From Lepidodermella squamata (Eukaryota > Animalia > Gastrotricha): DNA of 64,000 nt. Below, piece by piece: positions 33,499-62,835 of this stretch (the first letter of the stretch is position 1; every line of letters begins with the position of its first letter). Under the pieces are notes generated by a model. The model was not told the DNA's origin. It searched no databases and worked only from the letters and a program-made list of their open reading frames with translations. The DNA is taken from the NCBI GenBank assembly GCA_047495785.1, contig JBLDXI010000019.1:2046001-2110000 (forward strand), read 5' to 3'. The position numbers and the translations under genes were made by a program.

Positions 33499-36184
33499 AT
33501 GCTCTATCGTAGAAGATTGCCTCTCCCAAAGGCTGTGCAATGCCTTCTCATATTTTTATTTTTATCACCCCTGCTTATTATCGATTTTCTCCACGATTCG
33601 ACATGGCCATGTTTTGAATCGACTGGCAACCAGAAGCCAATTTCATTTTCTGATGATAATTTAACTCCGAGGCAACTCCAAGCCATCTCCCTGGCTGAGT
33701 CAATCAAGAACAATTATTTTGTAAAAATGGCTGAAAAAATGAGATCCGAGCCAATGGGTAACATTCAGTTTTCAACTTCATTCTGCCAGCCGTCGGCATT
33801 TTTAACGAATATTAAGTGTTACGACTTTATGTATTTGGCAATGTCGGCACGGAAAAAGGGCAAAAAGTGCAAATTCCGGAAACATCACCCGTGTTGCGGC
33901 CTGGGCGATCGGCTGCGAGGCTCAGTTATCGCTTTTTATCTCGCAATCGGCACAAATCGTGTGTTCAATTTCGACTGGAAGAAACCGGGCGATATTGCCG
34001 ATTATTTTGAAGTAAACGAACACTTTTACAACGACGCGGAGTTGCCGTATGATTTTAATGAAACTTACAATTCCGAGACTACAAAACTTGTGTTCCATCG
34101 CTGTGAGTTGATAAACAAGCCGTACAGCGAATATATGGCTCGAGAGACGCTGTTAAATGAGACGTCTCGCTTCAAATATTTGAAGCTATTTTCGAATCGC
34201 CACGCTGGGTTGGACTCAATTTTGCGGAACAGTGCGTTCAAGCGGAACTTTGAAGCATCCGCGCCTAGCTTGCTCGAGTATAACTACGATTTTAACATTG
34301 CGATTTCAGCAGCTTTGAGGCTCATTTTCGAGAGGCCTAATGCCAAATTGAGAAATCTGTTTGATGAAGCCATTTCTGCTACGATAGGACTGGATTTCTG
34401 GCATCAGTCGTTCAAGATAGCAATTCAACACCGAAGCTATGGTAAGTCGAAATTTCCAATATCAATGACTCTACGTCTTTTCGGCAGTGAAATTTCAGCA
34501 AATGAGGGTCAAATGAGCAGTGACATTTGAGCTGCGACATTTTGCGCAGTGGCAAATCATCAGTGACAAGTCGGCAGTGATTTTTGATAATTTATCCTAA
34601 ATTTTTCTAATTTTTTTTATCTTTATCTCGATGACATTTGTGCAGTGACATTTCAGCGGAGACATTTCATCAACAGAATTTCAGCCGTATTCAGCTGGGG
34701 GACTGCATTGAAATTGAGCTCGAAAAGTGAAAGTTCAATGCCTGAGATTAAACAATAAAAATTAATTAAGTGTCACTGCTCAATAGTCAATGATATTTTG
34801 TCGCTGCTGAAATGTCACTGCTCACTTGTCTACAAGAATTATTTAAATTAATAAAAAAATATGATTTTTATGGATTTTTTACTGACAAGGTGTCACTGAT
34901 GAAAAGTCACTGCTGATTTGACCCTCATTTGCTGATGTCACTGCTGAAAAGTCTGACCACGCTTTTTGATAATTTATAAATTAATTAAATTTGGGTGTGC
35001 CAAGTGCGCACCCTAAATTTAGGGTTCCAGCAATAAATTTGAGACTCCAGGTTTTTCGAATTTCAAGTCTTGACTAGAATCTCAAATTTTTTGTTATCAT
35101 GTCTAACGGACAGATCTTCATATTACGCGTATTTCGCGCTATGAGCCGTCAGTTTTTGCGAATTATACTTCATCCTATAGAGCCGATATCGATTCCAAGT
35201 ATCGATTTTACAAATCAGTGATTTCCCAATATCAGCCCTCTTGGAACCCAACATCAATAATTTTTCTAGTTTAGCTTAGGGCTTAGAGCATCATGTAGCT
35301 AAAATAAAAAATCCTAGGTTCAGTATCGATCACAAAACGATAACGCCGAAATCGCAAAGAATCTGAAAAATTTAGTGCTAGGACGCTTAAATTTAGCGCT
35401 GGAAGCTCATTTTTAGTGGAGGAAATATTTGGACTCAGTATTTGGTGTAAATAAGCAATAGTGTTCGATGTTTAGTTTAGCGCATTTCGCGTTAGCGCAA
35501 ATGTCGTTGGGGAAAGTGGCGCCCTAAGATTAGTACGTTGGGCTTTCGAAGTATATTTCATATAGAATTTTACGGTCATTTGATCAGCTAGATAGATAGA
35601 TCAGATACGAGAGCGAGTTGAATATTGAAAGTCGGGTTTCGCTCCCAAAATTTTCATCAAAGGATTAATTTGTACATTCTTCTCTTTTAGGGATCGATGA
35701 CATGTATCAGTATTATATTGGCGACGTTCGTTGTCAAGCTGAAGAAGCCATAAAGCTCTTGAACAGCGCAAACATCGCAAATGGCAAAAGCGTTGCAATT
35801 TTTCTGACAACTGATACGAATCGGGCTTCTGATGATTTGAAGCGGTTTTTGGCTGAAGAAATCGCGAAATCTCCGCGAACAATCAAAATTTTCATGACCG
35901 ATGGCATCCATAACATGACGATTCAGCATGTCGATAGGATAAATGGCGTGGATGACGAAGCTGTTTGGATGGGCGGGGCGAAAACGTACCTCGACTGGTT
36001 GCTGTTGACGAGAATGGACCGGCTGGTGATAACGCGAAGCGGGTTCGCCGAATCGGCTGCTCATCTTTCGCTGGCTACAACTCGGCGGCTCGTATCTCGC
36101 AATGAAGTGCCATGCAAATTCGATGATCACAGTGGCAGGACTTTGCCGGAGACATCCATGGGTCCTGAGAAAGATTTATATTAA
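33499..36184 (+). CDS. Fucosyltransferase-like protein B, exons 33499-34441 and 35691-36184
   Basis: Paralog of 15214-17063 with the same motifs and the same phase-1 intron. Confidence 0.8.
34477..34951. mobile_element. Intronic MITE with repeated CAGTGACA motifs
   Basis: cagcaaatgagggtcaaatgagcagtgac / gtcactgctgatttgaccctcatttgctg. Confidence 0.7.
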
Positions 36185-38515
36185 CATTTTTCGTATCGAG
36201 TTGATAATTAGATATTAGAGCACTGCTTCTAATTTTACAATGCAAATCGCACGATTTCTAATTTTGAGTTTTTTCACTTAGAACGCGTGCGTTTTTCTTA
36301 TTCGCATTTCTAATTCACTTAGAACACGTGCGTTGTTCTAATTAGCGAATTAGAACACGCACGTTTTTTATTGCGCGTAATTACTCATTCATTAAACAGC
36401 AACGCATTTTTACGCACAGCAATAATTTCTCATTTTTATTGCACACACAAAACGCTGTTAATAACCGAGGCGATAGCCGAGGTTACCAAAGGCGAGCGCA
36501 GCGATGCCTTTAAAATACAACGAGGCGAAGCCGAGTCTAGTAGTGAAAAGCGAGTGAAGCGAGCCTGGATGAGACGTTGAAATGAGTCGAAGCAAGAGTG
36601 GAACGAGGCGCAGCCGAGTGTAACGAGTGCGGAGACGAGTTTCAACGTTTTCCATTCTTTTAAGCCACTTTTCTGCCTGCTGTTTATTGAACGTAGTATC
36701 GCCATTCTTCGTGCGGCGAGTGCACAATTATTACCCTCAATAAAACACACACACACCAGTGTTAGCAATAATGCAATAACGCGAGCGTTGCAAAACTGGC
36801 ACGAATTTCGCATTGCTAGGCGCAACGATTTCAGTAAATTGGCTTCGCTCTCAAAGGTGGTCATAATTTCGATGAGCTGGGCATGTTCAGCGAGGTACTA
36901 GTTGATGCTCACTCAAAGCAGAAATGTGAATAAAATGAGGTGAAAAAACTCGCGTAACTCAGTCCCTGAAAATTAGAAGCCGTGCTCTAATAATGTTAGA
37001 TCACTCGTTTTGATACTAATCTCGAAAACGCTGCCTCTCGTAAACTTCGACTCGTGAAAAACTCGCGCTCCACTCGTCTGCGCCTCGTTCCGCTTGCTCG
37101 TTTTTCACTCGTCTTCGTATACTCGAGATTATAAAAAAATCCGCCGTTAAGGCAAAAGCGTTGCAATTTTTCTGACAACTGATACGAATCGGGCTTCTGA
37201 TGATTTGAAGCGGTTTTTGGCTGAAGAAATCGCGAAATCTCCGCGAACAATCAAAATTTTCATGACCGATGGCATCCATAACATGACGATTCAGCATGTC
37301 GATAGGATAAATGGCGTGGATGACGAAGCTGTTTGGATGGGCGGGGCGAAAACGTACCTCGACTGGTTGCTGTTGACGAGAATGGACCGGCTGGTGATAA
37401 CGCGAAGCGGGTTCGCCGAATCGGCTGCTCATCTTTCGCTGGCTACAACTCGGCGGCTCGTATCTCGCAATGAAGTGCCATGCAAATTCGATGATCACAG
37501 TGGCAGGACTTTGCCGGAGACATCCATGGGTCCTGAGAAAGATTTATATTAACATTTTTCGTATCGAGTTGATAATTAGATATTAGAGCACTGCTTCTAA
37601 TTTTACAATGCAAATCGCACGATTTCTAATTTTGAGTTTTTTCACTTAGAACGCGTGCGTTTTTCTTATTCGCATTTCTAATTCACTTAGAACACGTGCG
37701 TTGTTCTAATTAGCGAATTAGAACACGCACGTTTTTTATTGCGCGTAATTACTCATTCATTAAACAGCAACGCATTTTTACGCACAGCAATAATTTCTCA
37801 TTTTTATTGCACACACAAAACGCTGTTAATAACCGAGGCGATAGCCGAGGTTACCAAAGGCGAGCGCAGCGATGCCTTTAAAATACAACGAGGCGAAGCC
37901 GAGTCTAGTAGTGAAAAGCGAGTGAAGCGAGCCTGGATGAGACGTTGAAATGAGTCGAAGCAAGAGTGGAACGAGGCGCAGCCGAGTGTAACGAGTGCGG
38001 AGACGAGTTTCAACGTTTTCCATTCTTTTAAGCCACTTTTCTGCCTGCTGTTTATTGAACGTAGTATCGCCATTCTTCGTGCGGCGAGTGCACAATTATT
38101 ACCCTCAATAAAACACACACACACCAGTGTTAGCAATAATGCAATAACGCGAGCGTTGCAAAACTGGCACGAATTTCGCATTGCTAGGCGCAACGATTTC
38201 AGTAAATTGGCTTCGCTCTCAAAGGTGGTCATAATTTCGATGAGCTGGGCATGTTCAGCGAGGTACTAGTTGATGCTCACTCAAAGCAGAAATGTGAATA
38301 AAATGAGGTGAAAAAACTCGCGTAACTCAGTCCCTGAAAATTAGAAGCCGTGCTCTAATAATGTTAGATCACTCGTTTTGATACTAATCTCGAAAACGCT
38401 GCCTCTCGTAAACTTCGACTCGTGAAAAACTCGCGCTCCACTCGTCTGCGCCTCGTTCCGCTTGCTCGTTTTTCACTCGTCTTCGTATACTCGAGATTAT
38501 AAAAAAATCCGCCTT
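35783..38515 (+). repeat. Direct tandem duplication, period 1368 bp (3' part of FucT-B exon 2 plus a 3'-UTR insertion element)
   Basis: ORFs recur at +1368 (36184/37552, 36371/37739); the copies look identical by eye. Confidence 0.92.
37151..37552 (+). pseudogene. 5'-truncated duplicate of FucT-B exon 2
   Basis: Matches 35783-36184 but lacks the splice acceptor and exon start. Confidence 0.8.
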
Positions 38516-40663
38516 AACGGCGGATTTTTTTCTAATTACGCGTTTTCTCGATTAGAATCAAAACTCGGTGTTCTAACATATATTAGAAATTTAATTATTG
38601 ATGATAGTATAATAGAATGTTATACATTTATTTTCTGAATGTGCTATTGAAGTAAAATGACCGGAAACAAGTGAAAAGTGGGGCTAGGCGAAATTTTGGA
38701 CATCGTGAGATTTTGATGGCGGACTTTCAAGATCAATTAACGAGCAGTCGAACGATATCAAAAGGAGGTTGATATTCATCAGGGTTGCTGAGAAAATGGG
38801 CTTCAAAGTTTAAGAGCAAACAAATGCTAATTTAAAAAATTGAGTTTTTTATTGGATCAGCTAATAATCCCCCACGCAATAAATTCTGATGTTATTTTCT
38901 TATGCACAGTCGGTTCTATGCCAATTAAGCAAACGAAAATTTAGCAAGGGCTTTTGAGCAACGAATGGATTGAATGAAAAAAATTCTAGAAAATCAGGAA
39001 AAAATCTTCCAAGCTCGCTCCAAGCATCGAAATGTAGAGCTTGATCAGAATTACCTGGTCAATTAAAAATACTCTTCAATTTCATTGTCTTATTGGCAGT
39101 TGGCATATTTTATTAATTGATCATTTTTATGCGATTTTCCCCATTTCAAAAACAGAATATCTTTTAACGTAACCAAATTTGCCTGTTGCGGAACCAAATC
39201 GGCATTTTGCGGAACCTAATTTAAGGAAAGCGAAAGGTCACTTTTTGAATTTTTCTACGAAATTGAGGCAATGCATGAATCCGATAGTGAAGAATGTGTC
39301 TTTTTCAGAGTTTTACGCTGAATTTAATGATGATTTATTTCAAATTATGCTGATAAATCATGACAAGCTTGAATGCTTCAAAAATTGGCTTTAGGCTCAT
39401 TTGGTTCCGCGACAGTCAAATTTGGTTCCGCTAAAAGAAAGGCCCTTTCAAAAATAGTCAAAATTTCGAAAAAATAATCAACGTGTTCATCGTTTCAAGA
39501 GCTATCCAGAACTGCCGGAAATTATTGATTGTGATTAATTGTTCAAGAATAATTAGCGATCGAAAATCACCTGATTTGTTTACTTTTCCAACCACTCGAT
39601 GCTGATTCATCACAACATCTGGTGCCCATGGCGTTTACAGGCTTTGTCAGGAGTAGGACCATCTTAAAACTAGCTCTATGAGCGTGTCAGATCTCTCTTT
39701 TTTATTTATCTATGACTGGCGATTCGCTCTGCGGTGCACATGTTTTTTCTCGCCTGCGAATGAGAGAAAAAAGAAACGAGTTAGTGCGAGGACCTTTATA
39801 TAGCGCAAAATACACAGAACGATTTATCGGTAAACTGTGTGATTATGAAAAATTGAGATATTCCATGTCTATTAATTTATTTCCAGCGATTGCATGCGTT
39901 TCAATCAAAAAATTATCGATTCATTGAATTTCAAGCAATTTTAGTCTATCCAGTCTCCACTTGTGGGGACACTTATCATTAATCGCCAGTCGCTTCCTAT
40001 GCGACTCAATCCCCCCTGGCTGATTGCCAAGGTCGACTTTTTCGAACAGGTACTCATGCGGGTTGATCGAGGCGTAGCGATTCAGAAAATTGGCGCAATA
40101 AATCGGCCTCGCCTCCAAGTCTGTCATCGAGAAACAAACACCCTGCCGAATCGCCCGCCACCAAGTCGCCCAACTGTCGCTGTTATCGTAATGCGAGTAA
40201 TGAATAGCAACTTTGGGCGCGACTCGGATAAAACTGGGCGGCACCCCGGCTTCGGCCAACGTTCTCGTCTGGCCGTCGAGGTTGCTCACCCATCCAGGCT
40301 GCGACTCGCTGATAATCCAGTAGTAGTCGTCTCGAAATTTGTTCCACATGAACGTGCACATGAACGTGCTCATTTTTCGAAAAATTACCTTTGTAACCCG
40401 TCAATTCATATGTTGTTAGAGGCGCACGCGCCCACCACGACGGACCTTCCGGGTTCGGCGGGCCAAACATCGGCCTTACAACGGGTTTGCCATCGACGAA
40501 CACGTCATTGAGACCGACCCTCGAAATGAAGGCTGCATTCGTGTCCGTAAAGCCAACATACTCGGCATCTGTAAAATTATCCGCCCAAAATTTCAACCTA
40601 CGTTAAATAAAATATGAAGTGTTCTTTCATATATATTCATACTAAATTAAGTACGCAGCTTCC

Positions 40664-40979
40664 CGGTTACGTAATATTCCAAATTTCTGGATCATAAAAT
40701 TCTGCTTTTAAAACTGAGTAAAAATAATATCTCATCTAGAAAGCTGAGATAACTTGGCCTTATCGAATTTGCTGGCTAAATCATGAAATTAGGGTTGGAA
40801 AGCTCAGGAAACCTTAAAGGTCCCGAACCTTAGATCGAACTTCATGAAAATAGGGCAAGACTCCTGATTTTGTCAGCAAATTTGATAAGTTATCTCAGCC
40901 TTCTAGATGAGATATTATTATTACTCAGTTTTAAAAGTAGAATGTTATGATCTACTAATTTCGAATATTAGGTAACCCG
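40664..40979. mobile_element. Intronic MITE with ~90-bp imperfect TIR
   Basis: cttttaaaactgagtaa...atctcatctagaaagctgagataactt / aagttatctcagccttctagatgagat...ttactcagttttaaaag. Confidence 0.7.
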
Positions 40980-41493
40980 AAAGCCGATCAACAACAAATA
41001 TCCACTCTGGAAAAACATGTATGAAAGGTAATTTTGTCATCCACAAATATGTACGAAATTATAAAATTTCATACAAATTTGCACCCAATAATGGTAAATT
41101 TATCGGAATCATACACAATAATAAGCTTACCATTGCGACTTGTGCCATCCGTTGCACGGGAAGACACGTTTCGGGTAGAAAATCCTGACATCAGTGTCGA
41201 GTACATCTCGGCTGATTTTTTCAACTTTCGCGCCGAAATTATTAGCTTCTTCCTGATTTTCGCCATCAGCTAAAATCACAAGTTTCAGATGATCGGCCGG
41301 CCAGAATAAAGCCAGGGTATAAGCGAGCCAGTTTTTGTACTCGTCAAATCGCCGGTCATCGGCGGCCGACGTCACCATGAGTTCGATATCGGGCCATTTG
41401 TCATCGCACGACCCACGCTCCGGTATTACAAATTCCGCGGGAAAAGTTGGGCTTGAATTGGATTTCAGGACAGCTTGTTGTACTTGTTGTACA

Positions 41494-42080
41494 CTATATG
41501 GCCATAAAGAAACGCACACCAGTCGAAAAATGCGTTGCGTAAATGGCTGCCATCAGGGTGATGTAGGCCTTTCTAGTTTTAAGCACGAATTCTGATGCGC
41601 TCATATGATTTGAAGTTGGCTATATTATTACTTTCTACGACTTTAGTGGAGGGTTGTTTCGTGTCAAGATTGTCCGCGAGTACCCTATAATTCGGTCGGA
41701 AGATACTTACCCGCCACCTTGATGACAGCCACTGGGGCTTCACGCAGTTCTGACGAGATTCTGCCCGTTCAGCTCGAAATTGTGGGATATTGGTCAATGG
41801 AAACCAGCAGTATTATCACTAATTTGGAGCTGTTTCTGGTGCCTTGGAGAGCTTATGCTCATCTCCGGCGTGCTCAGAAGTCGTGAAAATCGTCAAGAAT
41901 GTCCCATTTCGGGACCATAAATTGACCCATTTCGAAGGTGTTGGAAATGGTTTTCAACGTCAATTACGAATTTAAAAGAACACGATTTGGAAATATCTAA
42001 TGACATCCGGTTTAAAATAACGTCATATTAAACGATTAACGCACGTTTCGACTGGCGTGTGTGTCTCTATGGCCATATAG
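41494..42080. mobile_element. TIR element inserted in X1 exon 1
   Basis: ctatatggccataaagaaacgcacaccagtcgaaa / tttcgactggcgtgtgtgtctctatggccatatag; absent from paralogs X2 and X3. Confidence 0.8.
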
Positions 42081-45090: not shown

Positions 45091-45185
45091 TGTATTTTTA
45101 TTTTTTTTCTGCCTTTAAATTCAATTTGTATGTCAAATGAGGGCAATTAAAAGAGATTTTAGTTTGTTTGTTAGACAGCGATTCA

Positions 45186-46914: not shown

Positions 46915-46949
46915 AAGTCATAAGTCAGAAGTCGAGAAGATCTCGATTT

Positions 46950-49012: not shown

Positions 49013-52000
49013 ACATGAACGTGCACATGATCGAAAATTCGGCTTCGTTGCCAACTTTTATTACCTTTTCAAAAGTTTGGTCGAACGTCCAGCCGGGCTT
49101 GCCGGCGTTTCGAATTATTGCATCTCGCATGTATTTAATATGGTCAGTTTTCACGATTACAGGAAAATACGACATACAGTTGAACGGCTCTGTGAAAAAT
49201 ATAACAAATTAAAAAAATGCGGAGAAATTGAACACAACTCGTCAGACATAACAGAGGTGATCAGCGGTGATAAAACAAAGCATCTTTTAGCGAAACCAAT
49301 ATTCAATTTGGTAGTCAACTTAGAATTTGTAATTTTCGAACAATTTCATAAATTAATTATGTAGAGCAAGAATGCAAGCACGATTACTGAAGATTTTCCA
49401 CTTTGCTGCCATGCTCTCTACATCGCGGCTGAGTAAGGCCATTGGCCGATCATGTCAAATGACTTGAGCTAGAGGTGACATTTCGCCAGCAGCTTTTCAA
49501 AATTAATGGTAATTTTAATGAACTTTGGCAAAACGGAAAAAATTACCGAAATTTTTTATAATGTAGGGGTTTATCATATAGGGTATAGGGTATATATTTT
49601 TCTTCCTGTTTCATGGTCTAAATAAATTTCCACCGTCTTCTAACAATTTTCCAGCTTTAATACAAAAGGTTACGCACACAGGTTGCGCACAGCAAAAGTT
49701 ACGCACGCGCGGTTGCGCTCTTGAGGTTGCGCTTACGGGAATTGACCCACTGGTCATTCAAGTAAGTATTCCTTATTATTTTTAATTTCTTAATAAATGG
49801 CGTAATATCTACCTAACATTTCTCTTAATAATCCACGCAAGTTTTAAAATTCATGTAAAATTGATTAACTAATTAAGCAACAAAATTCAGAGGACTATTT
49901 TCGACGCTGTCTTTATGATCAAATCGACTCTGCCCTCTACCGATAAAGTCAGCTTTATCCAATAAATTCGACATTAGCAAGGTTTCCTCTGGCTTTGACC
50001 TCACCACGCAGTTCACCATCTTGGGGTCGACTTAAAAGATAATTATTGAGTAAAGCTGACTTCACCTGGCACTAAACTAGGCGCCATTTTAAGATTTCCC
50101 ATCATTAGCCGTGACCTCATTTTAGCCAGCCTCTTTTATTGCTATGATTATTATTTTTACAAATAGGTCAACACTTATTTTTGAGGTCAAAACATCTGAT
50201 TTCGGACAAAAATCGATCCTTTAATCTCTCCGCCGAGACGTCGCCAACCTTCGAATGGTAGAAGCTCTGTCAGCTCAACGCCGCTACCGCGAAGCCTGGG
50301 AGCGACTCAACCGTCTCGACAAGCAGCGCTCGACTGGTCCTATGAAGCTTGATGATGGTCGCGTCTTAGAGCCGTCCGTCGAGCTCGCTGATGTCCTTCT
50401 CGATCAGTTTGTGAAGCCCATGACGCCATTCACCGACCCTGCTGCCGACGCCTATCTGAAGCAACAGTGGGCTGACATCGAACAGTTCGTCGCCTCGGAT
50501 CCCGACCTGCAACGCACTGACCGCCTTCAGCTTCCAGCCCCGGGCGAGTTCTCCGTCATTCAGCGCATGGTTGCCGATGCTGTGTCACGCCTCAAGCCGT
50601 TCAAGGCTCCCGGGTTGGATGGTATCAGTCCAATCTTCTACCAGTGGGGTGGACCGGTGCTGCAGCGCCACCTCCGGCACATGTTCAACCTGAGCCTCGG
50701 ATCGCGCTTCGTACTGCCCGAATGGAAGGAAGCTGCTGTGATACCCATGCCGAAAGCTGGCAAGCCGTTAGGAGCTGTCTCATCCCAGCGGCCGATCTCG
50801 TTGTTACCCGTCGACGGCAAGCTGTTGGAGTCCATCGTGGCGCGTTGGTTGGGCGAGTTTTTGGAAAGCCTCTACGCCCTGCCCGACAACCAGTATGCGT
50901 TCCGCGCGCACCACTCTGCACCCGATGTCCCTTTACGCGTCGCCCACACTGTTCACCTTGCCCGTTCTCGACACCGAAAAGTGATCGCTGTTGGTCTGGA
51001 CGTCCAGGCGGCTTACGATTCCGTGTGGAGTGCTGGCCTGGCGTTCAAGCTTGCTAAACTGTCGCTTCCTCGAAACCTCGTTGGGTGGCTGACCGATTTC
51101 CTTCGCGATCGCAACTTGCAGGCTCGTGTTGCAGGCTTCCTTAGTCGACAAGTTACCGTCAACTGCGGCGTACCGCCAGGCTCGCCGCTGTCGCCGCTGC
51201 TCTATATCGTTTACACTTCCGATCTGCTGAACGCGCCGGCTGCCCCGGGGTGTTATCTCGATGCCTATGCTGATGACCTAACTGTTGTCGGTGAAGGGGT
51301 GGATTTTCCAGAAGCTGAGCGTGCTACCCAGAATGAGATCGACCGGATATCAGCGTGGGCCCACGAGTGGCGGCAAATGCCTCCAAGAGTGAAGTGATGC
51401 CATTCGCGTGGCGCAGCTACGATGCCCGACTAACACTCGATGGCTCGGCTATCCTGCAAGTCCCAGTCCTGCGCAGTCTTGGTGTCCATCTTGATGCTAA
51501 GTTGACCTGGAAGGCACACATGGACCGCGTGATCACCCGCCGCTGCACTCGCAATTTATCGCACTTTCGCAGTGTCTGTCGAGCCCCTGGCCTTTCTCGC
51601 CGGTGGCGCCGAACCGCGTATCTAGGTCTCGTTCGAACCACGTCAACGTATGGTAACATCGTTTTCTGCACTGCACCCAAGCCGCAATTCAAGCGCCTTG
51701 ATGTCCTTCAGAACGATTGCCTTCGGGCTCTACTGAACGTCCGCTGCGATGACCACGTCAGGGTCTCGGGGCTCGAACGTCGCGCTGTCCCCAGTCTCCC
51801 GTGTTTCTTTGAACAGACGCAGCGCCGTTACGCCGACAACGCCGTCCGCTTCGTCCTCCCGATCCGCGAAGCTGTCGAGCAACTACGTCTCTCTGCGAAC
51901 CCGGTGCCCCTGTCTCCGCTGGCCCTGATCGCCAGCAGGCTTCCTCGGGGTCCTCTGCCCACCTTCGGTGTGTGATCTTTCGGTGTCTCTTCCGTCTTTC

Positions 52001-53128
52001 TATAACCCTGGTTCCTCTTCTCCTTTCTTTTCTCGTTCTTCCTGCTGCACTCCTCTGTTCTGATTAACCCATTCCATGTAATCTTCTGTATACGATAAAT
52101 ATTCCTTTAGCTCGCCCACTAGCGTCCTCAGCGCACTGCCGCAGGCAAGCGCATGTCGTCTCGCAACCGCGTGCCATCTATGTCACTTTGTATATATTGT
52201 TCGAAAGAAGGGAATTTATTATGTTATATTGTTCTTTTATATTTTTGTGACTGATGGACAAATAAATTTGAATTTAGAATTTAGAATTTAATCGGCCATC
52301 ATAGTTTATGTTTGCAAGTTAAGCCGACTTTTGTTCGAAAATCATACCGGTTAAGTCTACTTTATTTCCAGGCGATAAAGTCGACATTACGGGATAAATT
52401 CAACTTTACCGACAAAGACGTTTTCGAAAACCACCCTGATTGTTAAGAATTTTACCTTTGTAACCCGTCAATGCATAAGTCGTATTCGGCGCTCGCCCCC
52501 ACCAATCCGGACCTTCCGGATTCGGACGAATGAAATTTCAACCCATGCAGTAAATATCGTGCAAAATTACCTTTGTAACCCGTCAATTGATAAGTTGTAT
52601 TCGGCGCTCGTCCCCACCAGTCCGGACCTTCCGGATTCGGCGGGCCAAACATCGGCCGCACAACAGGTTTGCCATCGACGAACACATCGTTGAGGCCGAC
52701 CCTCGAAATGAAAGCCGCATTCGGGTCCGTAAAGCCGACGTACTCGGCGTCTGTAAAATTATCCGCCCAAAATTTCAACCTAGGAGGAAATAAAATAATG
52801 GATAATGGTAAATTTACCGGAATTATACACCAAAATGAGTTTACCATTGCGACTTGTGCCATCCATTGCAAGGAAAGACACGTTTCGGGAAGAAATTCCT
52901 TGGATGAATATTGAGTATGTCTCGGCTGATTTGTTCAACTTTCGCGCCGAAATTTTCAGCTTTTATCTTATTTTCTCCATCAGCTAAAATCACAAGTTTC
53001 AGGTGATTCAGAACTTCCACGGGAAATGTTAAGCTAGTATTGGATTTCAGGACCGCTTGCTGATAGACGAATAAACCTAACAAGGCGAGGCCGATGGTGG
53101 CTAATAAATTCAAACGTGGCCGAAGCAT
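49013..53128 (-). pseudogene. Uncharacterised GT-A-like paralog X2 (exons 53128-52845, 52779-52571, 49189-49013 truncated)
   Basis: ~45-codon in-frame deletion in exon 1 relative to X3; LINE in intron 2; last exon breaks off after IMCTFM. Confidence 0.75.
50227..52286 (+). mobile_element. 5'-truncated non-LTR retrotransposon (RT ORF, frameshift near 51375)
   Basis: KAPGLDGI, RPISLLP, NQYAFR, LDVQAAYDSV, GVPPGSPLSP (Q>P) and YADD; AATAAA plus a (TTTAGAA)n tail; candidate TSD tttaatc at 50220-50226 and 52287-52293. Confidence 0.92.
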
Positions 53129-54049
53129 TTTCTGTATAAAAATCTGGAATAAAAACAGAATATCTTTTAGCAGAACCAAATTTGCTATGTAGCTGAGCCA
53201 AAGTCGAAATATGCTAGAGTAATTTTTCTAATAATTCTACGAATTTTAGGCTAAGCATGAGTTCTAAATTAATTTTATGTCTTATAGAGAATGTTACGCT
53301 GAATTTACTGGTGATTTTGTAGAATTATTGTGGCCAAGCTTGACCCGCAAGAAATATCCGAAAAGCGATTTCAGGCCACTAGAAAATTCCAAAATGTGGT
53401 TCCGCTAAAAGGAGGACCCAAAAGAAAATATTTTGTTATTCAAATTAATTAAATTTGATATTCAATGAATCCAAAACTGGGAAATAAGGTCGCGAATATT
53501 AATATACAAGTAGCTTCATTAAATTAGTAGCCGATAAATTATTAGAGATTTAAGCAAAATACAATCAAATTCCGAGCATTAAAAATAGTAGCATCGATGA
53601 CATTTCAAACATATATGCAATCTCGATCTAGCGAGATTCTCAATGTTGGAAAATTAAGTTGATCTCGAAAAGTCGTTTTCCAGGGCACTTTTTTCCGCGC
53701 GCATGACGAAATTAGAACAGAAAATGACACCTTTACTGAATGCAATGTACAATAATCACTCATCAGTATCTGGGCCAAGCCTTCGAAACGTGGTTGAAAT
53801 TTCGCGTACGTCGTTGCATCATATTCTAACGCATTATATGCACAGTATATGCCTCATATAGATATATCGTAGACAGATGAGCAAAAAATAGCGGTTTTGC
53901 CCAAAAAGTTACATTTTTAGCGAATGTCTTAAAATCTAGATCTTAACGCATTTTTTAAGTTGAATTTCTAGTTTGTTAGATAGATACATAGATTTGTTTA
54001 CAACTACTTGGGCTGATTCATTGATTCAACAGCCGCGAATTGTTTTTCA

Positions 54050-56420
54050 ATGATCTGTCGTAGAAGATTGCCTCTCCCGAAGGCAGTGCGATGCCTTCTC
54101 ATATTATTATTTTTGTCACCCCTGCTAATTCTTTATTTTCTCCATTTTTCGACGGGCGAATATTCGACATGGCAATGGTTTAAATCAACTGGAAACCAGA
54201 CGCCAATTTCATTTTCTGATGATAATTTAACTCCGAGGCAACTCCAAGCCATCTCCCTGGCTGATTCAATCAAGAAAAATTATTTCGCAAAAATGGCTGC
54301 GAAAATGAGATCAGAGCCAATGGGTAATATTCAGTTTTCTACCTCATTCTGCCAGCCTTCGGCATTTTCAACGAATACTACGTGTTATGACTTCATGTAT
54401 TCGGCAATTTCGGGCGAGAAAAAGTGCCACTTCCGGGAACATCACCCGTGCTGCGGCCTGGGCGACCGGCTGCGAGGCTCAGTTATCGCTTTTTACCTCG
54501 CAATTGGCACAAATCGCGTGCTCAATTTCGACTGGAAGAAACCGGGCGATATTGCCGATTATTTTGAAGTAAACGAACATTTTTACAAGGCGGAGTTGCC
54601 GTATAATTTCAATGAAACTTACAATCCTGAGACTACAAAAATTGTATCACATCGCTGTGAGTTAGACGGCAAGCTGTACGGCGAATTTATGGCTCGACAG
54701 ACGTTGTTAAATGAGACGTCTCGCTTCAAATATTTGAAGCTATTTTCTAATCGCCACGCTGGGCTGGACTCAATTTTGCGGAACTTTGCGTTTACGGAGA
54801 ACTTCGAAGCATCTGCGCCTGGCCTGCTCGAGTATAACTACGACTTTAACATTGCGATTTCAGCAGCTTTGAGGCTCATTTTCGAGAGGCCCAATGCCAA
54901 GATGAGAAATTTGTTTGATGAAGCCATTTCTGCTACGGTCGGGCTGGATTTCTGGCATCAGTCGTTCAAGATAGCAATTCAACATCGAAGCTATGGGAAG
55001 TCGAAATTTGATTAAATTCAATTGTTAATATTTAGTAAAAATATACAGAAATAAATTTAATTTATAAAAAATATTCAATTCGTAAGAATGTTCGAAAAAT
55101 TCAAAATTTTTAACGAGAAGTCTTTTATTAGGAAAAATAACGGGTAAGATTTCCGAGCAGGCCCCTTTTTAATATTTCCACCACTAATAATGAGGTTACA
55201 GCACTAAATTTATTAGTCCTGGCACCGAATTTTATTGATTTTTTGCGATTTCGGCGTTTTCGTTATTGAACGATACTGATGCCTTTCCTGATCCCAGAAT
55301 TTTTTTTAGCTAATTGGTGCCCTATAAGCTACGTAGAAAAAATATCGATGCTGGGTTCTAAGACGATATCGGGAAAATCACTGATTTGTAAAATCTATAC
55401 TTGGAATCGATATTTGCTCAATAGGATTGAGTATGATTCGTAAACTGACCGCTAATAGCGCAAAATATGTGTAATATGAATCTATTAATTGGTTAGGCAT
55501 GATAACAACAAAAATTGAAATTTTAGTGAAGATTAGCAATTCGAAAAATTTTAGGGGAAATCTAGCGCACATTTTTTGCTGGAACCCTAAATTTGGGGCA
55601 CCCAATTTTCATCATCGGATTTTCGCCAAAGGAGTAATAAATGAATAAATAATTAGTTAAATATCTAGTAAATTCAAATAATAAATTCAAATAAAATTGA
55701 TAAATATATTGATTTAGCGCAATTGGCGTTTGCGCAAATGTCGCTGGCGTAAATGGCATGTGCTCTCTCGAAGTTCAGAATTTACGGTCATTTTTTAATA
55801 ATCCAAATCGCTCTCAGATCTCTCACAAAATCCGCGATTTCGATCAACGAATTAGAGAAAAATAAATTCAAAGTCGGGTATCGCTCCGGGTATTCTTCAA
55901 TTAATTTGTGCATTCTTCTCTTATAGGGATCGATAACATGTATCAGTACTATAGTGGCGACGTTCGTTGTCAAGCCGAAGAAGCTATAAAGCTCCTGAAC
56001 ACTGCAAATATCACAAATAGTAAAAGCGTTGCAATTTTTCTGACAACCGATACGAATCAGGCTTCTGATGATTTTAAGCGGTTTTTAGCTGAAGAAATCG
56101 CAAAATCTCCGCGAACAATCAAAATTTTCATGACCGATGGCATCCGCAACATGACGATTCAGCATGTCGATAGGATAAATGGCGTGGATGACGAAGCTGT
56201 TTGGATGGGCGGGGCGAAAACGTACCTCGACTGGCTGCTGTTGGCGAAAATGGACCGGCTGGTGATAACGCGAAGCGGGTTCGGCGAGTCGGCTGCTCAT
56301 CTTTCGCTGGCTCCAACTCGACGGCTCATATCTCGCAATGGAGTGCCATGCATATTCGATGATCACACTGGCAGGACTTTGCTGGATACAACTATGGGTC
56401 CTGAGGACGATTTATATTGA
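54050..56420 (+). CDS. Fucosyltransferase-like protein D, exons 54050-54995 and 55927-56420; donor reads GG instead of GT
   Basis: Close paralog of FucT-B; both exon frames are open; the donor site is non-canonical. Confidence 0.7.
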
Positions 56421-56834: not shown

Positions 56835-58575
56835 TCATTGAATTTCAAGCAATTTCAATCTATCCAGCCTCCACGTGTGGGGACATTTGTCGTTAATCGC
56901 CAGTCGCTTGCGGTGCGACTCAATCGCCCCTGGCTGATAGCCAAGGTCGACTTTTTCGAACAGGTACTCATGCGGGTTGATCGAGGCGTAGCGATTCGGA
57001 AAATTGGCGCAATAAATCGGCCTCGCCTCCGAGTCCGTCATCGAGAAACAAACACCCTGCCGAACAGCCCGCCACCAAGTCGTCGCATTTTTGCTGTTAT
57101 TGTAATGCGAGTAATGAATAGCAACTTTGGGCGCGACTCGGATGAAACTGGGCGGCACCCCGGCTTCGGCCAGCGTCCTCGCCTGGCCGTCGTAGTTGCT
57201 CACCCAACCCGGCTGCGATTCGCTGATTATCCAGTGGTAGTCGTCTTGAAATTTGTTCCACATGAACGTGCACATGATCGAGAATTCAGCTTCGTTGCCA
57301 ACTTTTACTACCTGCTCGAAGGTTTGATCGAACGTCCAGCCGGGCTTGCCGGCGTTTCGAATTATTGCATCTCGCATGTATTTAATATGGTCAGTTTTCA
57401 CGATAACAGGAAAATACGACATACAGTTGAAAGGTTCTGAATAAATACAAAAAGAAAAGAAAATGCGGAGAAATTTGCTTTCAATTCAGGTACTATTAAT
57501 ACCTATTAATTTTGGATAAATTAGGAAGCTGCGAGCTTGGAAAATGTCGAATTTAAAATTTCCGAGAAAAATATGTGAAGATATAACGAAAACTTCATTT
57601 GTAAAAGGTCCCACGGAAATATTTTACCGATACTTTTCAAGCCAGAAATCCATTTAAACCGGGTTTTTTTTATTTGATTTCCCAATTTCCGCAGCAAAAC
57701 ATTACTGGGCTAAAACTAATACTTATATTTTAATACATTTTAATTTTAATTTTTCAATGTTGCTATAAATAAGGAAAACTGCGCCCCAAAAGTTGAATAA
57801 TTTCGACCAAAATAATTGTTATATTTTTTTTTAAGAATTCAAATTGATCGACGAATGAAATTTCAACCCATGCAGTAAATATCGTGCAAAATTACCTTTG
57901 TAACCCGTCAATTGATAGGTTGTATTCGGCGCTCGTCCCCACCAGTCCGGACCTTCCGGATTCGGCGGGCCAAACATCGGCCGCACAACAGGTTTGCCAT
58001 CGACGAACACGTCATTGAGACCGACCCTCGAAATGAAGGCCGCATTCGTGTCCGTAAAGCCAACATACTCGGCATCTGTAAAATTATCCGCCCAAAATTT
58101 CAACCTGAGATGGGTTAAAAATGGTAAATTTATCGATTTTACAAGCAAAATGAGCTTACCATTGCGACTTGTGCCATCCATTGCACGGGAAGACGCGTTT
58201 CGGGTAGAAAATACTGACATCAGTGTCGAGTACATCTCGGCTGATTTTTTTCACTTTCGCGCTGAATTTGTCAGCTTTTTTCTTATTCTCGCCATCAGCT
58301 AAAATAACAAGTTTCAGGTGATCAGCCGGCCAGAATAAAGCCAGCGTATAAGCGAGCCAGTTTTTGTACTCGTAAATTCGATGGTCATCGACGGCCGACG
58401 TCACCATGAGTTCGATATCGGGCCATTTTTCATCGCAAGAACCGCGCTCCGGTTTTAGAAAGTCCACGGGAAATGTTAAGCTGGTATTGGATTTCAGGAC
58501 GGCTTGTTGAAAGAAAAATAATGCTAACGAGGTGAGGGCCAAGGCGGCTAATAAATTTAAACGTAGTCGAAGCAT
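56835..58575 (-). CDS. Uncharacterised type II membrane protein X3, putative GT-A-fold glycosyltransferase; exons 58575-58160, 58104-57896, 57436-56835; ~408 aa
   Basis: Intact in-frame GT-AG structure and N-terminal TM segment. SQWLKFWADNFTDAEYVGFTDTN...DVFVDGKPVV and MSYFPVIV resemble DUF6492-like proteins (recalled similarity); function is inferred. Confidence 0.7.
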
Positions 58576-59383
58576 AATCTGCAGAAAATTCAGAAAAAGG
58601 CTATTCAATTGTAATTTAATGAAGCAAAAAATTTGGAAAATAAGGTCGCGAATTGTCCATATTTTTTTTATTAAAATTGAGTAGATAAATTATTGGAAAT
58701 TCAAGCAAAGTACAGAAAATGGTGCCAAATTTTCTACGCAAATATTAGGGCCGTCTCATTATTTTTTGAATAATTCCGAATAATTATAAACGCTTGAGAT
58801 TGGAGTTTTGTGGCAGTGAAACATGCTGTTTCGTTTTCGCTATAGTTAAGCTTATCGATACTAATTTTTTAATGAATTATTCAAAAATCTGACCCAAGGT
58901 CATAAATCCTGAAAAAATACTCATAAACAAGATCGCTCTGAAATTAAAAGTCAAAAATTCATTCATTTTTTACGTGAATACTACTGCGAAAAAATCGGCA
59001 CGTTCCACAAATCTCACGTCAGTTATTTTTTTTTCAAAATTCAATCTTTATTAAAAAAATTTCATCATATCGCCCATATCACTGGCCCCTTTGAAAAATG
59101 AAATTGATACGGGCCATTTTTTAAGCGGAATCAAATTTCGAATATCGGGCCGAAAATTGCCCTTTACACAATTATCTAAAATCTACAATTCAGATTTTCT
59201 GAAATTTTCTGAATTTTCTGGATAACTGTTAAATGACAGTAAATTTCTGCATAATTTACAGTCAAAGGCCTTGAGTACGCGATTTAAACCATGCCAATTC
59301 CAAGCTATTTCAGTTTGACGCCGAAATTTTTCTCTATTCTCAAGCTGTAATTCTTCGAAAATATTTTTTAAAATAGATTCATC

Positions 59384-60382
59384 ATGCATTATCGGAAAGA
59401 TAAAAAGTGGCTATCGGCAATTTTGTTCGTCACTTTCGGAGGCGTTCTTTACCTTTACTATGATCATTCGAATTCAGATGCATCGACTTCTTTCTCTTAT
59501 TCAGCTATAACGAGTGAATTCGACTTGTTGGACGCTAAATTGTTGGCAATATCCTCACAGAAATCCAGCGCAATTCCTCGAATTCTTCACCAAACATGGA
59601 AAACATCGCAACCCGGCCCTAAATACGCGAAATACCGCCAGAATTGGTTGGACCTCCACAAAAATTGGACGCATCACTTGTGGACAGATGACGAAAATCG
59701 AGCCCTGGTTTCGAAGCACTACCCGTGGTTTCTAGCGACTTACGACTCGTTCGCAATCGGCGTCATGCGATCCGACGTCATTCGATACATGCTGATGCAC
59801 CGCTACGGCGGCATGTACGCCGATTTGGACGTTGAACCGCTGCGAAATCTCGATTTTCTATTCGATAACATCACCCAGCCCGTTGCCCTAGCATACCTAG
59901 GGTGCAGTTCAAGTCGCCACAACATCCCGCCCGCGTGGCTAATGTCCCGACCTGGCCATCACCTGTGGCTTCTCGCTATGATGCGGGCTCAGGATGCGAC
60001 GATGAAATATAAGGGAAATGTCAGGCCTGAGTACATAACAGGCCCTGTTACGTTGTATAAAGCCGTTGAAAGTTACATTGGACTGAAAAGCGAAACAACT
60101 GGCAAGCGGATTGACGCTCGTCCGCAGAACTGTTCGACTATCATCGGCGACTTGCGAGTTCTTGAGCCTGGCCTGATTTACCCGTATCACTGGAAGATGG
60201 CTAAAACGCCTATCGGCAGGGTTTGCAGTGGCGAGTCGAAGCAACAGGACGAAGTGGCTTGTAAAAAATTCTTCCCTAATGCCTTAACCATTCAATACAG
60301 CGGCAATTCTTGGAAGGACGACTGGAAAGGCTTTTTGGCCAATGCCAATGTCACAGAAGGTTGGAGCGAAGAGTCCTCATAA
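59384..60382 (+). CDS. Intronless GT32 glycosyltransferase (OCH1/SUR1-MIPC synthase-like, DxD)
   Basis: N-terminal TM segment; IPRILHQTWK, LWTDDE, RSDVIRYMLMHRYGGMYADLD and TGP. Confidence 0.9.
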   Translation: MHYRKDKKWLSAILFVTFGGVLYLYYDHSNSDASTSFSYSAITSEFDLLDAKLLAISSQKSSAIPRILHQTWKTSQPGPKYAKYRQNWLDLHKNWTHHLWTDDENRALVSKHYPWFLATYDSFAIGVMRSDVIRYMLMHRYGGMYADLDVEPLRNLDFLFDNITQPVALAYLGCSSSRHNIPPAWLMSRPGHHLWLLAMMRAQDATMKYKGNVRPEYITGPVTLYKAVESYIGLKSETTGKRIDARPQNCSTIIGDLRVLEPGLIYPYHWKMAKTPIGRVCSGESKQQDEVACKKFFPNALTIQYSGNSWKDDWKGFLANANVTEGWSEESS

Positions 60383-61508: not shown

Positions 61509-62835
61509 TCAAAGCTGTAAATTCGAATGAGGCTCATCGGGCCCAAATTCACGTGTCCAAATGCAAGCTCCAATTTTCGATCTAACATCAGAGCTATTAT
61601 GTTTAGCCGATTTCAAGCCATATACATCAGGCGACGAATTTGAATGCAGAATTCGACACAAATTTCGCCAGCCATTTTTAACCAACCAATTCGGCTGACT
61701 TGACACAAATTTATCATATTGCCATGAGTAGAATTTCGCTAGTTCAAGCCGATCAAAATTCGGCGCCGAAATTTCTTGAATTATTCGAACAAGATCGATC
61801 AAATTTTGTTGATAACTCGTCGCATCGATGTACGAACCAGCTGGTAAAATTTCCGAATATTTTCCAAGGCCATAAACGATCGGAATGAGGCCGTATTTCG
61901 AGCTGAGAGAAAGACTTCTGAAGGCCTTTTCCGATATGTATTCTTCACATAACGCGTTCTCAAAAGCCAGGTAAAATCGATATTGTTCAAAGAAGGATTT
62001 TTCGCCGAATTTACGCCATTTTTCATCCGGCTGGCTTGAATTCCAACACCTGCCCCAAATGTCGATTTTCACGCCGAGGCTCGCTAGTGATAGCACCAAT
62101 TTCTCACGCCGACTCATTGTTAAACAATCTTTAAATTAATTAAATTAAATTAATTATTTTAATAATTATTTTTACCTGAAACAATCCATACAGCATCTTT
62201 CGGGCGTTTCGAGAAAGAATCGACAAATTCGTTGATTCTCGCTCGGATATTTCTTTTAAAATTATCGCTAGATTTAACTTTTTCTTCAACATTTTGCGAA
62301 GCACCGTATGGGAAAACAATTTCCGAATATCGACTATACGACATGGTGTAGTTGAATCCGAAATTATGCAAAAAGTCCCGATATTCCGCATCGTATAATT
62401 TGTTCAATTGAGGCGGTTCCAAGGTGAATAGAATGTAATTTTGCCACGGTTTTCTCGCTTCAATCGGAAAATCGGTGTAATGATTTTGGAAGAAGCCATT
62501 TGTTTGAAAAATCAAAGCATCAGCCTCAGAAATTAGCGAACGATTTGTTGTTAAATAGCATCGATTTCGCTGGGTTGTAGTCACCCAAGGTCCGTTATTT
62601 TTAGCGAAAACCTTCGACCAATCCGGGTCGTCATACCAACTGCTCCATAACCTTGAAAAAAATTTAATTAAAAAATTAAAAAATAATGATTGACTCACAA
62701 TATAATTTTCGTCGAGTTTTCCGGAACATTCGAATTACCATAAATTAATGTGAATTTGTGAAAATATGCCGCCAATAACCAGGTCGTTGATAATATTGCG
62801 CCGATGATTACGAAAAAAATCGGATAGCGACTCAT
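61509..62835 (-). CDS. GT10 alpha-1,3-fucosyltransferase, exons 62835-62699, 62651-62176, 62128-61509
   Basis: TM segment; IILLW, LEPP, FNYTMSY, WIVSDC...RRE and YRFYLAFENALCEEYISEK; in-frame GT-AG junctions. Confidence 0.92.

Follow-up and report, generated by a model that had tools for sequence, protein, structure and literature searches.

Clusters that encode successive steps of a pathway are rare in animals, and in small invertebrates glycan structures are poorly tied to genes. Mixed-family 'glycoclusters' are known in Caenorhabditis elegans, for example in the C13A2, K06H6 and T15D6 regions, with some correlated expression (PMC7614267). We analyzed a locus of this kind in the gastrotrich Lepidodermella squamata, within a window of 64,000 nucleotides of contig JBLDXI010000019.1. 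In both systems, neighbouring single-pass Golgi-type genes of different CAZy families stand beside domains of unknown function and several paralogs of one family, and in both any function for the clustering is conjectural. The families themselves differ: GT37-like, DUF6492-like and GT32 here versus GT92, DUF268 and others in C. elegans. Unlike the C. elegans glycoclusters, the window contains no methyltransferase and no sugar transporter. An operon has been offered as the explanation in C. elegans; operonic co-transcription was rejected for the window because its gene orientations alternate.

Microbial O-antigen- or capsule-type loci offer a second comparison. There too, several glycosyltransferase families are adjacent. 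In contrast to those loci, the window has no recognisable gene for nucleotide-sugar synthesis, transport or export, no flippase, no polymerase and no operon, and its genes are Golgi-anchored and spliced (GT32 is intronless). In the microbial sense of a biosynthetic cluster, with precursor synthesis or export genes and co-transcription, the locus is therefore not one. In the C. elegans sense, at least three adjacent type II Golgi-type genes of different families, it is.

Between 33.5 and 62.8 kb of the window (~29 kb), the only recognisable non-transposon genes belong to four families: fucosyltransferase-like (FucT-like), X, GT32 and GT10. The original prediction held that every such gene here is a type II glycosyltransferase-like gene or a paralog of one; tblastn, Pfam and gene models bore this out, and all four families were found where it had placed them (Table 1). 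FucT-D, X3, GT32 and GT10 fit within 8.8 kb, with FucT-B, FucT-C, X1 and X2 upstream. Compactness and alternating orientation of this 'intact core' held up on inspection; its intactness did not, because the 5′ splice site of FucT-D reads GG rather than GT. Reading frames are open in the spliced models of FucT-A, -B and -C, X3, GT32 and GT10, each of which has an N-terminal hydrophobic anchor and, where introns are present, GT-AG boundaries. The rest of the recognisable content of the cluster is LINE reverse transcriptase and a MITE-like palindrome, along with unassignable ORFs. An Rfam search of window positions 1-60600 returned zero RNA families. In RNA data, a single possible run contains 17% of words.

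These data establish that glycosyltransferase genes of the Golgi type, with type II anchors, form a genuine cluster of several families here. Mixed glycogene clusters were already known from C. elegans, which weakens the earlier premise that animal glycosyltransferases of different families are usually unlinked (PMC7614267); what appears to be new, from sequence comparison, is the tie between X and DUF6492 and the recurrence of the gene neighbourhood.

Table 1. Annotated features of the cluster and its surroundings, in window coordinates
Feature	Position	Strand	Self-tblastn of window (kb)	Description
FucT-like A, predicted GT37-like GT-B fucosyltransferase paralog	15214..17063	+	15.2-17.1 (+)	exons 15214-16150, 16564-17063; 478 aa
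FucT-like B	33499..36184	+	33.5-36.2 (+)	exons 33499-34441, 35691-36184; 478 aa; intact, canonical splice sites
Tandem duplication, very recent	35783..38517	+		unit 1368 bp, 99.9% identical; self-blastn
X1, decayed X copy	39924..41534	-	41.5-39.9 (-)	tblastn, alignment to X3
LINE fragment	44.7-45.0 kb			recognisable non-glycosyltransferase content
FucT-like C	45186..46914	-	46.9-45.2 (-)	exons 46914-45825, 45685-45186; 529 aa; intact
X2, pseudogene	49014..53152	-	53.15-49.0 (-)	tblastn
LINE reverse-transcriptase ORFs	50255..51975	+		inside X2; Pfam RVT_1 4e-24
FucT-like D	54050..56420	+	54.05-56.4 (+)	exons 54050-54995, 55927-56420; 479 aa; both exons open
X3, only intact X	56835..58575	-	58.6-56.8 (-)	exons 58575-58160, 58104-57896, 57436-56835; 408 aa
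GT32	59384..60382	+		single exon, 332 aa, type II anchor, DLD motif
GT10, putative fucosyltransferase	61509..62835	-		exons 62835-62699, 62651-62176, 62128-61509; 410 aa

Fucosyltransferase-like, GT32 and GT10 genes

The four FucT-like paralogs have the branching pattern (C,(A,(B,D))), with FucT-A grouping with B and D. FucT-C is the oldest, sharing ~50% amino acid identity with B and D, which are 89% identical to each other (dN/dS 0.30, dS 0.22); dN/dS between FucT-A and B is 0.26. FucT-A, which lies outside the cluster, is an open spliced model with a GT-AG intron. The single 5′ splice site of FucT-D (54996-54997) is the GG mentioned above, in contrast to GT in A, B and C, and no alternative in-phase donor was found in its sequence.

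The Pfam family XG_FTase (GT37; gathering score 23.4 bits) matched three paralogs weakly, at a shared position and below threshold in each (B, 18.8 bits, E 7e-4; D, 17.5 bits; A, 11.9 bits), and did not match C. Because of these sub-threshold scores, we file the family as GT37-like rather than GT37. As a stand-in for the window protein we folded a homolog, P0002:330-802, which the FucT-like exons of the window match at 2e-33 and 6e-22. The homolog model (pLDDT 83.5, pTM 0.88) has the two Rossmann domains of the GT-B fucosyltransferase superfamily (GT11/23/37/65/68, NodZ). Foldseek with this model returned AtFUT1 first (E 1e-11), followed by FUT8, NodZ and POFUT, and every one of the best 50 matches was to one of these four.

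The best structural match, reached via the homolog, is thus Arabidopsis FUT1, a xyloglucan alpha-1,2-fucosyltransferase of GT37 (PDB 5KOE/5KOP). AtFUT1 and the FucT-like proteins have in common the GT-B fold, a GLG(D/N)R-type N-terminal motif and an Arg-containing motif I, but identity is 12-14%, the TM-score is about 0.45 and the Pfam match is sub-threshold. The acceptor of AtFUT1 is xyloglucan, which cannot be the acceptor of the animal enzymes. The Arg of an IQ(H/Y/L)R motif (IQxR) and the sequence RSGF(G/A)ESAA are invariant in A-D and conserved in relatives; we take the motif I Arg and the C-terminal S/T-x-F-type motif to bind GDP-fucose, as in FUT8 and POFUT. The model and motifs suggest that the FucT-like proteins are inverting GDP-fucose-type GT-B fucosyltransferases, GT37-like. 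Relatives are few, numbering 60 among 1.84 billion proteins. A word-based protein search with FucT-D exon 1 gave no match, and in profile searches of solved-structure sequences the FucT-like exons gave noise only.

The remaining two recognised families are assigned by Pfam well above their cut-offs. GT32 matches Gly_transf_sug at 1e-16 (61.9 bits against a cut-off of 23), which places it in that family, and its best match among solved structures is the alpha-1,6-mannosyltransferase Och1 (3e-4). It is predicted to be a DxD-dependent retaining alpha-hexosyltransferase of the Och1 or alpha-1,4-Gal-T type. A look-up of its exact sequence returned no record. We rejected a link to clostridial toxins, as that match was limited to a generic DxD stretch.

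The GT10 gene has two 47-bp introns and a type II anchor, YPIFFVIIGAILSTTWLLAAYF. Its product matches Glyco_tran_10_N at 5e-17 (62.8 bits; cut-off 28.7) and Glyco_transf_10 at 8e-25 (87.9 bits; cut-off 23.9), and its best solved-structure match is human FUT9 (4e-6). Exon 3 contains YLAFENALCEEYISEK, in which the FEN...Y.SEK stretch is kept, so that the GT10 motif is present; we take the conserved alpha-1,3-fucosyltransferase motif to be F..FEN....Y.TEK. The gene probably encodes an alpha-1,3/4-fucosyltransferase.

Gene X and DUF6492

X3 has introns of 55 and 459 bp and a type II anchor. X1 lacks ~600 bp, which takes out intron 2 together with the opening 52 codons of exon 3; its N-terminal anchor segment is displaced, and a MITE-like palindrome (40658-40984) lies within intron 1. 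X2 retains an intact exon 2, with an in-frame deletion of ~47 codons in exon 1, a LINE in intron 2 and an exon 3 truncated after 54 codons. Judged by these lesions, X1 and X2 are pseudogenes. Divergence between X1 and X3 is dS 0.25, with a dN/dS of 0.30.

X was searched against databases exon by exon, and its spliced sequence was used in local comparison only. None of the X exons matched a Pfam family at E values up to 10, and Pfam, PHROGs and NCBIfam together gave nothing beyond one weak GT2 match, that of exon 1 to a cellulose-synthase GT2 N-terminal region (4e-4). Exon 3 had no match among PDB sequences, and X queries had none in metagenome, viral and prokaryotic genome collections. A word-based protein search with X3 exon 3 also gave no match, which says nothing about full-length relatives. 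AlphaFold modelling of this exon with three paralogs reached a pLDDT of 35.

Language-model features of all three X exons pointed to DUF6492 (0.95, 0.86 and 0.82), and all neighbours of X in these features were GT-A families. A second line of evidence runs through a metagenome locus, L022, whose DUF6492-like ORF scores 22.7 bits against the Pfam family (E 6e-5; cut-off 22.9). X3 matched this ORF by blastp at E 2e-4, the best of 277 ORFs, with a Smith-Waterman score of 71 against 34±5 for shuffled sequences (p about 3e-5). When a profile was built from the DUF6492-like sequences of L022 and a second locus, L010, without X, it found X3 at E 5.7e-5. Three stretches align collinearly between X3 and the L022 protein: the N-terminal strand, the LFWP/VxxxD region, and the strand bearing the DxD position. 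In the DxD column, X1 and X3 have D-T-N and X2 has D-P-N; the canonical DxD is absent.

The collinear alignment of X3 and the language-model features of three exons agree on DUF6492 (PF20102), an uncharacterised Pfam family of which we found no mention in the literature searched. X differs from DUF6492 in its D-T-N, its eukaryotic type II anchor and its introns, and has no direct Pfam match. We conclude that X is a very divergent DUF6492-like protein, with homology drawn through intermediates by links that are each weak. Its fold is probably GT-A.

Gene neighbourhoods in relatives and distant eukaryotes

Relatives of the FucT-like genes occur at 24 metagenome loci, and the other families of the cluster reappear beside some of them. 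DUF6492-like genes lie near FucT-like genes in three eukaryote-like contigs (L022, L010 and L029). GT10 genes lie near them in L021, where the two are convergent and 147 bp apart, and in L026 and L029; in L033 a GT32 gene 36% identical to that of the window is 3.7 kb from the FucT-like gene. In these unrelated eukaryote-like contigs, DUF6492-like, GT10 or GT32 genes are within 5-10 kb of the FucT-like gene. All six of the long metagenome loci examined have glycan-related neighbours, and genes for O-FucT, DUF5672, DUF268, FkbM methyltransferases, Cas1 acyltransferase, Fringe-like and CAP59 proteins are found at the same loci. L010 and L029 stand nearer to the microbial O-antigen-type loci, with methyl- or acyltransferases and an added gene for GDP-6-deoxyhexose synthesis, a fusion of ColD and GDP-fucose-synthase-like parts.

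This recurrence bears on the prediction that the cluster serves one pathway, building a single fucosylated glycan. The recurring combinations of families speak for it, and the fusion genes in two contigs favour a shared fucose/6-deoxyhexose pathway. Against it, linkage is not conserved in the nearest relatives found: at four ENA loci the FucT-like genes are dispersed among unrelated genes, and the nearest GT32 relative, with 52% identity, has a different neighbour. Moreover, the metagenome loci with co-clustering lie in the opposite half of the FucT-like tree from the window genes, mostly in one clade; given this placement, the recurrences represent few independent events and not orthologous synteny.

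Since the same families stand side by side in distant microbial eukaryotes, it is plausible that those in the window cooperate on one fucose-type glycan. We lean towards reading the locus as a lineage-specific glycogene cluster of the C. elegans kind, whose enzymes act successively on the same glycans. They would do so in the Golgi, on the glycans of glycoproteins or glycolipids. Hexose residues would be added or extended by GT32 and X, and capping with fucose, or with a similar 6-deoxyhexose, would fall to both types of fucosyltransferase. GT32 is head-to-head with X3, with 808 bp separating their start codons, and proximity, including this presumptive promoter region, would favour joint regulation. 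If the families do cooperate, X3, GT32, GT10 and the FucT-like paralogs are candidates for building one lineage-specific fucosylated glycan.

The pairing of FucT-like with DUF6492-like genes looks like a functional module, since it recurs in distant eukaryotes, and it would suggest a testable role for a functionally uncharacterised family. More speculatively, GT37-like and DUF6492-like enzymes could form an ancient eukaryotic two-enzyme module, often with GT10 and sometimes with GT32, that builds a fucose/6-deoxyhexose-capped glycan and is retained, or has been reassembled, as a gene cluster from protists, there with GDP-6-deoxyhexose synthesis genes, to an animal. We hold this broader version to be doubtful. 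If it were true, the module would be to eukaryotes what O-antigen-type loci are to bacteria, and DUF6492 would gain its first functional context.

The presence of comparable clusters in microbial eukaryote-like contigs also raises the possibility that the locus was put together from bacterial, viral or protist genes gained by lateral transfer, an idea that the original prediction raised for some of the genes. No animal relatives of X were detected, and the entries of its nearest family, DUF6492, come mostly from bacteria and phages. The GT32 gene lacks introns, and its weaker homologs include bacterial or fungal ones. However, FucT-like, X and GT10 genes have spliceosomal introns, and all four families have eukaryotic type II anchors. 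A scan for the FucT-like signature motif found it in 0 genomes among 185,579 prokaryotic species and in 0 viral contigs, and A-D of the window form one clade adjoining animal-like sequences. Protein identities between the window and the microbial loci are just 21-36%, so any transfer would be ancient, and GT10 and XG_FTase-type enzymes are regarded as ancestral in Opisthokonta (PMC10481521). We therefore consider lateral assembly to be unsupported and highly improbable.

Duplication, decay and selection

Much of the length of the cluster is due to duplication of a tail-to-tail [FucT> <X] unit. Self-blastn showed the duplicated [FucT> <X] blocks to be 88-92% identical, and the two genes of the unit have diverged to a similar degree (dS 0.22 for FucT-B/D and 0.25 for X1/X3, with dN/dS 0.30). 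The very recent tandem duplication copied the 3′ part of FucT-B exon 2, leaving an orphan exon-2 fragment at 37154-37549. These comparisons show that the FucT-like genes expanded in place, following the branching of the tree, and that the tail-to-tail unit was block-copied afterwards; redundant copies have since decayed, leaving X1 and X2 dead and FucT-D without its GT donor.

On a rival reading, the cluster is a coincidence of duplication, in which expanded glycosyltransferase families pile up paralogs locally, GT32 and GT10 merely adjoin a FucT/X hotspot, and the genes serve separate pathways. Most of the 29 kb consists of copies of one two-gene unit and transposons. FucT-A adjoins HSP70 and MSH2, so the FucT-like family is not confined to glycogene surroundings. 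In the nearest relatives its genes are dispersed. What this account does not predict is the reappearance of DUF6492-like, GT10 and GT32 genes beside FucT-like genes in distant contigs, and glycan-related neighbours in six of six long loci would be unlikely by chance for families this rare. We regard coincidence as an appreciable possibility, if on balance an unlikely one; if the families do not cooperate, the locus shows how segmental duplication and decay yield pathway-like clusters.

The signs of decay could instead mean that the locus is a graveyard of redundant copies with few or no genes in use. X1 and X2 are broken and the FucT-D donor is GG, and the cluster has accumulated a LINE, a MITE-like palindrome and a tandem duplication with 99.9% identity. 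This seems very unlikely, because FucT-A, -B and -C, X3, GT32 and GT10 keep their frames, splice sites and catalytic motifs; as judged from their sequences, these six are the intact set at present. Wherever paralogs could be compared, purifying selection was evident, with dN/dS about 0.3 over a dS range of 0.2-0.8.

Gene models and content of the cluster

The cluster was predicted to hold four unrelated families of glycosyltransferase (GT)-like genes, and a search of the ORF translations against the window itself recovered all four within 33–63 kb: the FucT-like genes B, C and D (paralog A lies outside), the orphan gene X in three copies, and single GT32 and GT10 genes. Pfam bore out the last two, with Gly_transf_sug over threshold in the GT32 gene (1e-16) and the N-terminal (5e-17) and C-terminal (8e-25) domains each over threshold in GT10. 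Splice sites were taken from paralog comparison and then verified by translation. All modelled FucT-like, X3, GT32 and GT10 proteins have a hydrophobic anchor of type II at the N terminus, and every modelled intron except that of FucT-D is bounded by GT-AG.

Features of the window in and around the cluster
Feature	Position	Strand	Description
Satellite	2874-7455		375-bp unit, 12.2 copies, 94% identity
Inverted partial satellite copy	9699-10164		2.2 kb downstream of the satellite
Two ORFs	11114-13511		140 and 248 aa
FucT-like A	15.2-17.1 kb	+	two exons, 478 aa
HSP70	18267-19946		left of cluster
FucT-like B	33.5-36.2 kb	+	two exons, 478 aa
Tandem duplication	35783-38517		1368 bp, 99.9% identical
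142-aa ORF, two copies	36436-36864, 37804-38232		in tandem duplication
FucT-like orphan fragment	37.15-37.55 kb		exon 2
X1	41.5-39.9 kb	-	pseudogene
MITE-like palindrome	40658-40984		~330 bp, 98-nt arms, 89% complementary; inside X1 intron 1
FucT-like C	46.9-45.2 kb	-	two exons, 529 aa
LINE reverse transcriptase	50255-51975		fragment at 44.7-45.0 kb
X2	53.15-49.0 kb	-	pseudogene
Inverted repeat, 230 bp	53169-53395, 60960-61187		80% identical
FucT-like D	54.05-56.4 kb	+	two exons, 479 aa
X3	58.6-56.8 kb	-	three exons, 408 aa, introns 55 and 459 bp
GT32	59384-60382	+	single exon, 332 aa
GT10	62835-61509	-	three exons, 410 aa, two 47-bp introns

FucT-D, X3, GT32 and GT10 had been proposed as an intact core. 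The models of X3, GT32 and GT10 held, but FucT-D has GG (54996-54997) at its one donor site instead of the GT shared by A, B and C, and no in-phase substitute donor is visible in the sequence. Either a recent mutation has inactivated the site or the assembly has a wrong base there; unless the base is wrong, the core includes a possibly unspliced gene. Of the X copies, X1 and X2 are pseudogenes. X1 is missing ~600 bp that cover intron 2 together with 52 codons at the start of exon 3; in X2, exon 1 is ~47 codons shorter through an in-frame deletion, intron 2 harbours a LINE and exon 3 is cut short. With these corrections to X1, X2 and FucT-D, the observation of a multi-family cluster stands.

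Besides the GT genes, no recognisable element of 33–63 kb is a gene in the ordinary sense, and no family assignment was found for its remaining ORFs. The two copies of the inverted repeat lie in the X2/FucT-D and GT32/GT10 gaps. An MSH2-like gene accompanies HSP70 to the left of the cluster. The satellite has one inverted partial copy, and the two ORFs between it and FucT-A, which have no Pfam family, are possibly mobile-element remnants.

Identity of the FucT-like and X families

Pfam matches of the FucT-like genes to XG_FTase (GT37) were sub-threshold only, although they fell in the same region of A, B and D; we therefore call the family GT37-like and do not class it as GT37. Word-based protein searches found no relatives. 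When 1.84 billion proteins were searched exhaustively with a profile, only 60 were returned at E ≤ 1e-3, all unnamed and most from ENA metagenome assemblies, and the ENA contigs that we fetched encode animal-type Cys-loop receptor, ANF receptor and trypsin domains. Many relatives also match the exon-2 profile, indicating that the two-exon model is complete. For structure prediction we used residues 330–802 of P0002, the closest full-length relative, with a 37-row alignment that included the window exons (pLDDT 83.5, pTM 0.88). The best 50 PDB matches (Foldseek) were fucosyltransferases only, with Arabidopsis FUT1 first (E 1e-11), followed by FUT8, NodZ and POFUT1/2; ESM Atlas matches were unnamed, mostly molluscan clusters and plant XG_FTase clusters. 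The IQxR arginine and the RSGF(G/A)ESAA motif are invariant across A–D. The predicted structure of this homolog settles the fold of the family as that of a GT-B fucosyltransferase, as originally labelled. P0002 also has an extra N-terminal domain of ~330 residues (1–330; locus L007, 709-3117) for which Pfam gave no match.

Gene X matched nothing in Pfam, PHROG or PDB sequences. Exon 1 gave a single weak match, to the start of the cellulose synthase GT2 domain (4e-4), and exon 3 could not be modelled with AlphaFold (pLDDT 35). When the exons were searched separately with language-model features, DUF6492, a Pfam family of uncharacterised proteins, was listed for all three (0.95, 0.86 and 0.82), among other GT-A families. 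An ORF beside a FucT-like gene in metagenomic locus L022 (3956-5023) falls just under the DUF6492 cut-off (22.7 bits, E 6e-5; cut-off 22.9). Spliced X3 stays collinear with it across the boundaries of all three exons (blastp E 2e-4). The Smith-Waterman score is 71, where 3000 shuffles gave 34±5 (fitted p about 3e-5), and is the top X3 score among 277 ORFs from all fetched loci. The second-best match, in L010 (14244-15815), is clearly homologous to the one in L022 (p about 4e-10), and a profile of just these two retrieved X3 at E 5.7e-5, plus a third member in L029. The alignment pairs the first strands (IELMVTS with IDIFVRT), an LFWP motif, and the strands VILADGEN and VVVLDEAD. X is thus probably a very divergent DUF6492-like protein, for which we infer a GT-A fold. 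Its DxD strand, D-S-D in relatives, reads D-T-N in X and D-P-N in X2, which may reflect either different metal use or a non-catalytic protein. X1/X3 dN/dS is 0.30 across 339 codons, indicating a real, constrained gene.

Origin of the cluster

In the FucT-like tree, A–D group together with full support as (C,(A,(B,D))), adjacent to animal-like ENA proteins. By self-alignment, B and its flanks match D at 88–90% and X1 matches X3 at 89–92%; dS is alike in both genes (B/D 0.22, X1/X3 0.25), as is dN/dS (0.30 each). These matching divergences indicate that a tail-to-tail [FucT> <X] unit was duplicated as a block. One member of each duplicated pair then decayed: dead X1 adjoins intact B, and D, lacking a GT donor, adjoins intact X3. 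A tandem duplication that copies part of FucT-B exon 2 is, at 99.9% identity, very recent. It also holds a 142-aa ORF without known family.

The proposal that the cluster derives in part from laterally acquired genes is unsupported. X lacks detected animal relatives and DUF6492 clusters are biased to bacteria and phages, as such an origin would have it, but recent transfer is argued against by the introns and type II anchors, by the place of the A–D clade on the animal side of its tree, and by identities of 21–36% to the microbial loci. According to a published survey, GT10 and XG_FTase-type enzymes are ancestral to Opisthokonta, and in fungi their distributions match (PMC10481521).

Linkage of the same families elsewhere

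Linkage was absent near the window genes' closest reachable relatives. None of four distinct ENA/Logan FucT-like loci from the same half of the tree (flanks up to 10 kb) has X, GT32 or GT10 alongside; in one of them a GT31 gene lies at a distance of 4.4 kb. For GT32, the nearest relative (52% identity) sits on a 3.6-kb Logan contig, where the gene after it encodes an unrelated protein. This neighbour (L008, 2099-3657) is type II anchored, with an SGNH/GDSL-like 'NVND' block recognised by eye, and its second ORF had no Pfam match.

In contrast, the same families are co-located in distant metagenome loci. A pattern scan of JGI metagenomes yielded 24 loci whose FucT-like relatives are more distant, and the neighbours there are nearly all glycan-related. 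In L021, FucT-like and GT10 genes are convergent and 147 bp apart, on a contig that also has PARP and P450 exons; L026 has FucT-like, GT25 and GT10 genes, and L033 a GT32 gene, 36% identical to that of the window, 3.7 kb from a FucT-like gene. L022 pairs FucT-like with DUF6492-like, and methyl- or acyltransferases lie near FucT-like genes in L012, L025, L027 and L028. L029 combines a ColD and GDP-fucose-synthase-like fusion with DUF6492-like, CAP59, FucT-like, Fringe-like, HtrL-like and GT10 genes, and L010 has O-FucT, DUF5672, FucT-like, DUF268 and DUF6492-like genes with the same fusion. DUF6492-like, GT10 and GT32, three of the window's four families, thus recur beside FucT-like genes. The fusion (L010, 15926-17935, minus strand; L029, 1-1947, plus strand) encodes, as one polypeptide, a ColD-like PLP-dependent GDP-4-keto-6-deoxymannose 3-dehydratase and a GDP-fucose-synthase-like reductase, so that both loci also contain a gene for making GDP-6-deoxyhexose; it suggests GDP-colitose-type sugar synthesis within eukaryote-like glycogene clusters. 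The source organisms are eukaryote-like, judging by type II anchors and, in L021, exons. Scans for the FucT-like motif had no hits in genomes of 185,579 prokaryotic species or in IMG/VR contigs. In the FucT-like tree these loci fall in the half without A–D, most of them in one clade, and the independent events are few.

That the same families lie together again in distant eukaryote-like loci strengthens the reading of the cluster as a pathway for one fucosylated glycan, a reading that is plausible, if unproven. A precedent exists in another animal: C. elegans has mixed-family "glycoclusters" of Golgi-type genes, with some correlated expression, whose function is unknown (PMC7614267). One of two sequencing runs with the stretch, a possible RNA run, holds 17% of its words.
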